Shown here piece by piece: positions 15,459-18,587 of a stretch of DNA of 64,000 bases (position 1 is the stretch's first letter; each line of letters opens with the position of its first letter). Position numbers and translations under genes: made by a program. The notes beneath the pieces are model-generated. The model made no database searches and was not told where the DNA came from. It worked only from the letters and a program-made list of their open reading frames with translations. The DNA lies in assembly GCA_020184695.1 (NCBI GenBank), contig JAANOX010000126.1, positions 558,001 through 622,000 on the forward strand. Reading direction: 5' to 3'. The DNA is from Histomonas meleagridis 2922-C6/04-290x. Its lineage: Eukaryota; Protista; Parabasalia.

Positions 15459-15794
15459 TTACATTTCATGAAAATTTACGCTCTTACAATACGCATCGGC
15501 TTTTGCCATCAAGAATTGAATTTCGCTCATAACGTTATCAATTTCTTGATTAATTTTTGTCATTTGTTCTTGAAATTCTTGCTCATTTGATTCAAATTCG
15601 TGGAAACTAAGTGAACGAACATTGGGCGTTTCTTCCCAATGTGATAATAATTCGGAAAGACTAAGAGAGCTTTGTTGATTTGATTTTGATTTCCCAAAAG
15701 ACATTGGACAGTACGTTAAGGTTGGGGTGCACCATATAACCTTCTTTTTTTGAGTGAGAAAAGCGGTTTCTGTTAAAGGTTGGCCATTTTGCAA
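15459..15794 (-). CDS. Small hypothetical coiled-coil protein (start uncertain)
   Basis: 111-aa ORF from TTG. The first ATG gives MSFGK..., and the C-terminus has heptad-like residues. Confidence 0.45.
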   Translation of the reverse strand: MQNGQPLTETAFLTQKKKVIWCTPTLTYCPMSFGKSKSNQQSSLSLSELLSHWEETPNVRSLSFHEFESNEQEFQEQMTKINQEIDNVMSEIQFLMAKADAYCKSVNFHEM

Positions 15795-15813
15795 GAACGT
15801 TCCAGCAAAAAAA

Positions 15814-15904
15814 GTATGTACTTTCCGTGATGAGTTGATGCCGCCCCAGTCTGAGACATGAGGATACGGCCTCTCTGATCCAAAATAGACATTCTAACAC
15901 ACAG
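15814..15904 (+). other. Canonical parabasalid spliceosomal intron (91 nt) in an apparently non-coding host
   Basis: Begins GTATGT (15814) and ends TCTAACACACAG (15893-15904), matching the Trichomonas GTAYGT...ACTAACACACAG consensus at 11/12 of the 3' motif. Confidence 0.85.
15827..15878 (+). ncRNA. Box C/D snoRNA, predicted guide for LSU rRNA Gm2251-equivalent (snR67/SNORD31-like)
   Basis: Box C GTGATGA 15827-33, D' CTGA 15851-54, C' ATGAGGA 15858-64, D CTGA 15875-78. The D' guide (T)GCCGCCCCAGT is antisense to the conserved LSU P-loop (A)CUGGGGCGG. Confidence 0.88.
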
Positions 15905-16260
15905 AGTGAAAAAATAAAATCTTTGAAGATTCTTTGATTGTTGTTTTATTTTAATAAAAAGAGATAAACTTGAACTTTAATTGTTATTTTTTCTTTTTTG
16001 TTGATGTAGTTATTGGGATTTTAGGACGATTTTTTCATCATTATTGCAATCATTTTAAACTTTAAAATTAATAATTTCTTTTGTTCTTCGAAAAAAAGTT
16101 TTTTATATGGAATGGTTTTTTATGTGAAATAGTTTTTTATTTCGAAAGTAAAGCGATTCCAAAAGTACTTTGCATCTTGAGCATGTAACGGTTTTAACTT
16201 TTTATATGAAAACTTGTCTGCCAAAATTTTTGAACGCAAAAATTACTGCCAATATTTCCT

Positions 16261-16833
16261 ATGTCCAACCATTCAGGAGAGAAAAAGCCAATACAGAAGT
16301 CAAATGTAATTTTTCTCAGTAATATTCCCCCCAACAAAAATGATGTTCATGAAGTTTTTAAACATTTCAAGCATTATGGTCGTATCCAATCAATATGGGC
16401 TGAAGGAACCAAAGCCACAATAGTTTATGAAACTCCTGAAATGGCTGAAGCTGCCTTTAATTCCCCAGAAGCATTTGTTGGTAATCGATTTGTCCGCTAT
16501 TTTTATCATAAGAAACCGGAAGAAGCTGAATCAAGCCTTTCCAAAATAGTTGACAAAGACCGTGTAAATGCCGCTCTTAAAGAAGCCAAACAACAAATTG
16601 CTAATGCACAAAAAGATACCATAATGCTTCAAAGCCAAATCTCATCACAAAATCTTATAAACACAAAGAAAGAGATTGAAGACTTGCTTAAGGAAGTTAA
16701 ACTCAAACTTATATCAGAAACCAATCCAGAATCTCGTGCAGAATATGAGAATGATTTACAGTCTCTTGAAGAGATGCTGCAGTCTATTGAAAAAGACATT
16801 TCGCAAAAGGAAAATACAAATAATACTGAATAA
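16261..16833 (+). CDS. RRM protein (RBM26/27-like RRM) with a coiled-coil C-terminus
   Basis: IFLSNIPPNKN..VFKHFKHYGRIQSI...ATIVYETPEMAEAAFNSPEAFVGNRFVRYFY. Confidence 0.75.
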   Translation: MSNHSGEKKPIQKSNVIFLSNIPPNKNDVHEVFKHFKHYGRIQSIWAEGTKATIVYETPEMAEAAFNSPEAFVGNRFVRYFYHKKPEEAESSLSKIVDKDRVNAALKEAKQQIANAQKDTIMLQSQISSQNLINTKKEIEDLLKEVKLKLISETNPESRAEYENDLQSLEEMLQSIEKDISQKENTNNTE

Positions 16834-18044: not shown

Positions 18045-18587
18045 ATGGTAAGAGTCGAAAAATGTTCTTTTTGTGGAGGACCTGTTTGGCCAGGCCACGG
18101 CACTATGTATGTTCGTAATGATTGCAAAACTTTTCGATTCTGTAGGGGAAAGTGCAGAAAGTTTTGGATGAAAAAGAAGAATCCTCGTAAATTCAAATGG
18201 ACAAAAGCTTATCGTGCAGCGCAAGGTAAAGACTTGGTTGTTGATTCAACTTTCGACTTTGAACAGCGTAGAAATCGTCCAATCAAATACGATCGTAATA
18301 TTGTTGCGCAAACGCTCCGCACAATTCGTTTGATTGATGAAATTCGTCAACAACGTGAGGCTGCACATTGGGAGAGGAGAATGAGAACAGCAGCCACTAT
18401 TGAAACAAGACAGAAATTATTTGATATTGCACAGAACATCAATCTCATTGAACATGTTCCTGAGGTTGTCAGAGAGCAAACACAAAGAGCAGAAGCTGAA
18501 ATTAATGAACATAAAGCTATGATATTAGAAGAAAGAAGACAAAAGCGTTTGCAACAAAAACAAGAGAATGGTAATAATGATCAATAA
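18045..18587 (+). CDS. RLP24: Ribosome biogenesis protein Rlp24 (RSL24D1)
   Basis: CSFCGGPVWPGHG..YVRNDCK.FRFCRGKC..NPRKFKWTKAYR..GKDLVVDSTFDFEQRRNRPIKY, with the long C-terminal extension typical of Rlp24 rather than eL24. Confidence 0.9.
   Translation: MVRVEKCSFCGGPVWPGHGTMYVRNDCKTFRFCRGKCRKFWMKKKNPRKFKWTKAYRAAQGKDLVVDSTFDFEQRRNRPIKYDRNIVAQTLRTIRLIDEIRQQREAAHWERRMRTAATIETRQKLFDIAQNINLIEHVPEVVREQTQRAEAEINEHKAMILEERRQKRLQQKQENGNNDQ

Follow-up and report, generated by a model that had tools for sequence, protein, structure and literature searches.

A U31/SNORD31-type box C/D snoRNA enclosed by trichomonad splice signals in Histomonas meleagridis

Small nucleolar RNAs (snoRNAs) encoded in the introns of non-coding host genes are known from animals. 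Human SNORD31 (U31, RF00089) is one of them: its host SNHG1, a long multi-intron gene for a long non-coding RNA (lncRNA), carries eight snoRNAs and makes no protein. SNORD31 guides the modification of 28S Gm4166 (PMC13507652). In Giardia, GlsR4 (RF02473) guides 23S-Gm2040 and has as its homologues yeast snR67, plant AtsnoR35 and vertebrate U31 (PMC11427974, Table 1); the snoRNAs of Giardia lie in short intergenic regions, are probably transcribed independently and have no intron frame (PMC11427974). For Trichomonas and Giardia, whose introns are few and short, intronic snoRNAs have been called "highly unlikely" (PMC3228867), and within the limits of the library that we could search we found no paper that reports them in parabasalids. 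Here, we analyzed a stretch of 64,000 nucleotides (nt; the window) from contig JAANOX010000126.1 of the parabasalid Histomonas meleagridis, whose 43-Mb genome has 28% GC and few introns (PMC8529796). The window contains a box C/D snoRNA of the U31/snR67/GlsR4 type that nearly fills a 91-nt frame of trichomonad splice signals. The snoRNA is a new member of a well-known family; what is new is its apparent packaging as a conserved one-intron non-coding mini-gene in parabasalids.

The initial annotation of this DNA had described an intron frame at 15814-15904 that is almost filled by a 52-nt C/D'/C'/D cassette, and every feature that it named lies where it had been placed (Table 1). Counted from the R of the C box through the last D-box nucleotide, the box C/D unit is 52 nt long. 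The C-to-D' spacer is 17 nt and ends in GCCGCCCCAGU, the D'-C' spacer is 4 nt, and the C'-D interval consists of the 10-nt UACGGCCUCU. In a permissive Rfam scan that covered the window on both strands with all 4,227 families, the cassette gave the only matches with E values up to 0.05. Both were full-length: GlsR4 at 15820-15880 (40.7 bits; E = 2.7e-4) and SNORD31 at 15820-15884 (33.7 bits; E = 1e-3 at window scale, 8e-6 locally). Despite scores below the Rfam gathering thresholds, the two alignments span every box and the guide. The kinship with snR67 and SNORD31 that had been claimed for this RNA is borne out by these matches and by the published list of GlsR4 homologues (PMC11427974). A transfer RNA (tRNA) scan of the window returned none.

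In length (61 nt), in its D' guide and in an ACGGC core before the D box, the Histomonas RNA resembles GlsR4, its best Rfam match; it is more compact than SNORD31, with its 4-nt D'-C' spacer. The snoRNA stands out as a GC-rich island (52% GC, compared to 28% in the window). No clear terminal stem adjoins the boxes; a weak outer pairing of AUGUACU with AGACAU is predicted within the intron, and the fold scores no better than those of shuffled sequences (z = -0.5). Judged by its boxes, its guide and the full-length alignments, the cassette encodes a real snoRNA of the U31/snR67/GlsR4 type, the Histomonas orthologue of the conserved eukaryotic U31/SNORD31.

The D' guide pairs with ACUGGGGCGG in the P-loop of large-subunit (LSU) ribosomal RNA (rRNA). 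That the guide is antisense to this loop, as first annotated, was confirmed on Escherichia coli 23S rRNA: the 10 nt before D' are the exact reverse complement of ACTGGGGCGG (positions 2247-2256). C15846, the fifth nucleotide upstream of D', pairs with G2251, the same G whose equivalent the D'+5 rule had been said to select. The guide is identical in a second cassette found in a metagenome (L009, described below) and in the GlsR4 consensus, and the SNORD31 consensus differs at the distal end alone. Human SNORD31 likewise has the guide core CCGCCCCAGU before D' and the same modified P-loop G, and in yeast snR67, which is listed among the homologues of GlsR4, directs methylation at the equivalent P-loop position (PMC11427974).

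The region before the D box has an ACGGC core that is common to Histomonas, L009 and the GlsR4 consensus, and the four nucleotides adjoining the D box differ between all three; a guide acting by the +5 rule would need these four to pair. Yeast snR67, which is not known to be intronic, has a second assigned target, whereas none is assignable for the Histomonas RNA: a comparison of the D-box region with E. coli 23S rRNA gave chance 7-mer matches only, in line with the initial annotation, which had left this guide unassigned, and the region may instead pair within the RNA. Pairing of GCCG (15840-15843) with CGGC (15867-15870) is present in the predicted folds and is possible in Histomonas, L009 and the GlsR4 consensus, and the SNORD31 consensus has UACC and GGUA in the places of GCCG and CGGC. 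This post hoc comparison of four sequences points to a short helix within the RNA, co-varying with the rRNA target, rather than to a second guide.

The splice signals around the snoRNA were compared to those of trichomonad introns. Long (type A) introns of Trichomonas vaginalis, validated by long reads, have the form GTAYGT{42,104}ACTAACACAYAG, and short (type B) introns end in TCTAACAAACAG (PMC13548475). In Histomonas, the donor GTATGT (15814-15819) is followed by a 73-nt body and then by TCTAACACACAG, which starts 14 nt past the D box. This 3' motif agrees with the type A motif at 11 of 12 positions, the sole mismatch being a T in place of A at the first position, and a T there is the form found in validated type B introns, which are also spliced. 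At 91 nt, the cassette falls inside the validated trichomonad range of ~59-196 nt. The "canonical intron" of the initial annotation thus holds as a trichomonad frame matching at 17 of 18 positions, with the qualification that its 3' motif starts with T rather than A and that a second possible donor, GTACGT, occurs at 15711. As main donor the latter was rejected; the proximal donor alone is conserved in L009.

The motif CTAACACAYAG, with one mismatch allowed, occurs once in the window, compared to ~0.023 exact matches expected under a first-order model, and the window contains no type B acceptor. GTAYGT by itself has 26 matches, as expected by chance, and the probability that one falls in the 30 nt before the C box is ~0.008. 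We conclude that a splice-signal frame on the right strand around the sole detectable snoRNA is not due to chance. The cassette shares with validated type A introns of messenger RNAs (mRNAs) the donor GTAYGT, the fused CTAACACAYAG and a length within 59-196 nt. Unlike the Histomonas cassette, those introns interrupt or precede coding sequence and have a GC content of 13 to 35%; the cassette, whose splicing we infer, has a GC-rich core and no coding exons. The flanking exons are non-coding, as had been annotated: the + strand has no ATG from 15640 to 15813, and the locally joined exons contain open reading frames (ORFs) of only 1-6 codons before 16260.

To look beyond Histomonas, metagenomes were scanned for a D' guide that has the 3' motif at a distance of 25-55 nt behind it. 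The scan gave one match, L009 (Ga0209639_1000494), from an uncultured parabasalid. An SBDS protein in the same metagenome is 62% identical to Histomonas SBDS, versus 66% for Tritrichomonas foetus, and upstream of the cassette lies a homologue of AP-3 delta, for which T. foetus has the best named relative (34% identity). The L009 frame, GTATGT...ACTAACACACAG, occupies 96 nt (1943-1848, minus strand) and reads, in order, GTATGT, 12 nt, TGATGA, 6 nt, GCCGCCCCAGT, CTGA, 4 nt, TGAGGA, AACGGCTTAA, CTGA, 15 nt and ACTAACACACAG. Its 3' motif is the full type A form, its snoRNA matches SNORD31 (35.1 bits; E = 6e-5 for the locus) and its terminal stem is a clean 7 base pairs (bp; UUUGCUC/GAGCAAA). Both organisms have retained the boxes, the D' guide and the two splice signals, and the spacer between donor and C box, the spacer between D box and branch motif and all flanks have changed, the exon flanks among them.

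The genomic setting differs as well. The L009 cassette begins 77 nt past the AP-3 delta stop codon on the same strand, with a convergent ORF opposite. Neither a snoRNA nor a canonical intron frame was found at the SBDS loci of T. foetus, an uncultured parabasalid and another organism, or at the AP-3 delta loci of T. foetus and another organism. The position of the cassette is therefore not conserved, and, given that boxes, guide and signals are kept while spacers, flanks and neighbors differ, what is conserved as a unit is the snoRNA within its frame of splice signals rather than a host gene. As a side observation, the AP-3 delta homologue beside L009 (2020-3981, minus strand) is 653 amino acids (aa) long, compared to 960-970 aa in its relatives; its C-terminal third is missing or too diverged, and no continuation was found beyond the cassette.

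Table 1. Features of the snoRNA cassette and its surroundings (positions in the window)
Feature	Positions	Strand	Remarks
Box C/D snoRNA, U31/snR67/GlsR4 type	15820..15884	+	Predicted mature RNA ~55-65 nt; full-length Rfam matches
C box GUGAUGA	15827..15833	+	Aligned with the C box in both Rfam models (GlsR4, SNORD31)
D' guide GCCGCCCCAGU	15840..15850	+	Antisense to LSU P-loop ACUGGGGCGGC; C15846 is the +5 position
D' box CUGA	15851..15854	+	Sequence and Rfam alignment
C' box AUGAGGA	15858..15864	+	Sequence and Rfam alignment; UGAGGA also in L009
Region before D box, UACGGCCUCU	15865..15874	+	ACGGC core can pair with GCCG in the D' guide
D box CUGA	15875..15878	+	Sequence and Rfam alignment
Intron-like frame, 91 nt, GTATGTA ... 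TCTAACACACAG	15814..15904	+	Trichomonad type A consensus, 17/18 positions
Fused branch-site/3' splice-site motif TCTAACACACAG	15893..15904	+	Predicted branch A at 15897, 19 nt past the D box
Putative exon 1 of a tiny non-coding host	15780..15813	+	Ends ...GCAAAAAAA; contains GTTCCAGCA at 15799-15807
Putative exon 2	15905..15940	+	Begins AGTGAAAAAA; TAAA at 15915-15918 is a possible poly(A) signal
Open frame ("head-to-head ORF")	15459..15794	-	111 codons; first ATG at 15704; not supported as a gene

Among the closest known counterparts of the cassette are the "putative inactive introns" of T. vaginalis and Trichomonas stableri, which are 100-135 nt long and lie mostly outside ORFs (PMC12316389, S3 Table). 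Compared by eye, without a tool, nearly all long entries of both species contain C-like and D boxes with terminal stems, arranged as in the Histomonas cassette. Of the 18 long canonical entries for T. vaginalis in that table, at least 16 share one layout: a C-like box (TGATGA, TGAAGA, TGACGA or TGAGGA) past the donor, a CTGA or CCGA 25-40 nt before the acceptor and, often, a terminal stem. Likewise by eye, T. stableri has counterparts of about 12 of 15 T. vaginalis families; in these, both motifs are intact and the spacers carry substitutions. The Histomonas cassette is similar to these sequences in the order of its parts (GTATGTA, a spacer of 10-30 nt, a C-like box, guides and CTGA boxes, a spacer of 25-40 nt and ACTAACACACAG). 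It differs from them in that they are slightly longer, have a 3' motif that begins with A rather than T and include none with the P-loop guide. The word snoRNA is not applied to the "putative inactive introns" in that publication, and a T. vaginalis orthologue was not found: no entry with the P-loop guide occurs in the supplementary tables that accompany PMC12316389 and PMC3228867.

The explanation that we favor, with confidence somewhat above even, is that a conserved snoRNA is released by splicing from a mini host gene with a 91-nt intron and directs methylation of the P-loop G. Such a host would be a transcription unit of its own, made up of a short non-coding exon, the 91-nt intron (donor GUAUGUA; branch site and acceptor UCUAACACACAG) and another short non-coding exon with a UAAA nearby. 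On the precursor, core small nucleolar ribonucleoprotein (snoRNP) proteins would assemble at the C/D and C'/D' motifs; the intron would be excised by the spliceosome, and the lariat would then be debranched. Exonucleases would trim both ends to the protein-protected RNA of ~60 nt, and the ligated exons would be a throw-away product. The D' guide would form a duplex of 11-12 bp with the LSU P-loop and so place fibrillarin on the G that corresponds to G2251 of E. coli (Gm4166 in human 28S) for 2'-O-methylation. If spliced in this way, the RNA would be like human SNORD31 in coming from an intron of a host that makes no protein, and unlike it in that the host would have a single, nearly filled intron and tiny exons.

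Several observations weigh against this explanation. The snoRNA lies close to both splice signals: the C box is 14 nt from the donor, and the branch A is 19 nt from the D box. In vertebrates, the spacing that favors splicing-coupled snoRNP assembly is much larger, and a bound snoRNP so near the splice sites could hinder the spliceosome. At gathering thresholds, Rfam gave no matches in the window: SNORD31 reached 33.7 of the 40 bits required and GlsR4 40.7 of 70. Since both scores fall below these values, the cassette is not a called Rfam member by Rfam's own rule, and the comparison to the snR67/SNORD31 models envisaged in the initial annotation yielded a full-length SNORD31 match (E = 1e-3) with a sub-gathering score. 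At window scale, the E values of both matches are still significant. The target pairing was scored against E. coli 23S rRNA, so that pairing with Histomonas rRNA is deduced from a P-loop sequence that is universally conserved. Upstream of the cassette, no initiator-like TCAYW element can be seen. Finally, 34 T. vaginalis and 20 T. stableri motif-bearing sequences lack support from RNA sequencing (RNA-seq) and were suggested to be remnants or stage-specific genes (PMC12316389).

Data from sequencing runs bear on the same point. They consist of contigs assembled from four runs (five runs were found for one organism, none of them recorded as RNA); such contigs drop rare forms and show neither ends nor strand, and the runs may contain DNA. 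The splice joint 15813/15905 is absent from the contigs of all four runs, and three carry the unspliced form. Contigs from two runs are unspliced over the whole cassette. A contig from run X4 starts at 15834 and continues unbroken through the spacer and the downstream 190-aa gene past 17000, an extent that speaks against a short second exon; a neighboring contig of this run has a tenfold lower depth, which looks more RNA-like than DNA-like. We consider the contigs compatible with both splicing and its absence, and transcription may extend into the downstream gene. That the cassette is truly spliced seems to us moderately probable. As a separate observation, the X4 contig lacks 17 nt of T-rich spacer at 15981-15997 that are present in the window and in runs X1 and X2; the segment has no intron signals, and the gap is probably a strain indel.

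Some of these observations would be explained if the snoRNA were real and the splice-like motifs acted without productive exon joining, so that no host gene in the usual sense existed. The motifs might bind U1/U2 small nuclear ribonucleoproteins (snRNPs) or other factors that mark the ends, or a first-step-only or discard pathway might feed the RNA to exonucleases. Such a role would account for the conservation of the motifs around the snoRNA in a second species and across T. vaginalis/T. stableri pairs, for the absence of junction reads for such cassettes from published RNA-seq and from the Histomonas contigs, and for the very short distances from the snoRNA to donor and branch site. We nevertheless consider it unlikely. 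The full-length 7-nt and 12-nt signals are the same as those of validated trichomonad mRNA introns, for which the same complete reaction is the simplest reading, and missing junction reads are to be expected in published poly(A) RNA-seq if the ligated exons measure only tens of nucleotides and the libraries were poly(A)- and size-selected. It is less probable still that the snoRNA is transcribed and trimmed on its own and that a host gene, since lost, has left its splice signals behind to decay, which would make the cassette an "inactive intron." Remnants of genes that are not transcribed were the proposal made in PMC12316389, and the lack of splicing evidence for the Histomonas cassette and for its T. 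vaginalis look-alikes fits this. A relic would not be expected to match at 17 or 18 of 18 signal positions in each of two distant parabasalids when the spacers next to the signals and all flanking genes have changed, or to keep its motifs intact in most T. vaginalis/T. stableri pairs despite spacer substitutions (by eye).

We also considered whether the frame is an intron in the 5' leader of the RRM-like 190-aa gene that follows it (16261-16833, + strand), which would make the snoRNA a passenger of a protein-coding pre-mRNA. Cassette and gene lie on the same strand 356 nt apart, the X4 contig runs unbroken from 15834 into the gene, and introns in untranslated regions (UTRs) are unexpectedly common in T. 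vaginalis. Against this, the 356-nt would-be leader has six upstream ATGs and six TAAA signals, whereas trichomonad leaders are normally very short. Moreover, the L009 cassette has no such gene downstream, with AP-3 delta upstream of it and a convergent ORF opposite, a contig over two genes does not demonstrate a single transcript, and the runs may contain DNA. A leader intron is therefore improbable in our judgment. Finally, boxes, guide and splice motifs might coincide by chance in AT-rich spacer DNA, for which one could cite the chance-level abundance of GTAYGT alone. However, the joint expectation is ~1e-7 or less per window and an orthologue exists in another organism (L009), such that coincidence has almost no chance of being correct and we count it as already refuted.

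With splicing-dependent release from a mini host gene as the favored explanation, the comparison to Trichomonas allows a broader proposal, to which we give an even chance: in parabasalids, many box C/D snoRNAs, perhaps the majority, would come from dedicated mini-genes with one intron and throw-away exons, and snoRNA release would be a main client of their reduced spliceosome. If so, snoRNA release would be one reason that intron-poor lineages keep a spliceosome and rigid splice signals, the published Trichomonas "inactive introns" would be active snoRNA genes, and even the ancient P-loop guide U31 would be made from an intron, as in human cells. Splicing of the cassettes would add a functional intron class to lineages with only a few dozen validated introns and would re-explain the published "inactive" set, and the question of why intron-poor protists retain a spliceosome would become directly testable. 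For Histomonas, the analysis annotates a guide RNA for one of the most conserved ribosomal methylations.

A broader search for U31-like patterns gave five matches in bacterial and archaeal genomes and none in viral contigs. Three of the five lie in large bacterial contigs, approximately the number expected by chance. The other two, found in Marinifilum and Ancylomarina assemblies, are scaffolds of only 430 and 570 nt that match the U31-like C box and P-loop guide pattern; eukaryotic contamination, possibly from an animal or from humans, is their probable origin.

In the public gene calls, a gene for a membrane protein (411/433 aa) and the 190-aa gene enclose a gene-free gap of 1,083 nt, and the cassette lies in the middle of this gap. 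The poly(A) signal of trichomonads is UAAA (PMC13548475); a TAAA occurs 11 nt past the acceptor, and TAAA is also found at the stop codon of most genes in the window. A G(T/G)TCCAGCA sequence occurs upstream of both donors, 7 nt before the donor in Histomonas (15799-15807) and 28 nt before it in L009 (~1979-1971, minus strand). It could be a start or promoter element of the mini-gene; a 7-mer shared by two 60-nt stretches is insignificant alone. The host had also been described as head-to-head with the ORF at 15459-15794. A minus-strand open frame is indeed present there, and it has neither a public gene call nor a detectable homologue, with only a weak, sub-threshold Pfam match. Its local GC content of 0.35-0.40 is coding-like, and a low-depth contig (15443-15659) covers its 3' part. 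It may be a species-specific small gene or a chance frame.

Farther downstream, an L24e-type protein gene (18045-18587, + strand) has been called publicly from its second ATG, giving 160 aa, whereas the frame from 18045 encodes 180 aa. The Pfam L24e domain match begins at residue 3 of the 180-aa frame, and the public call is probably 20 residues short.

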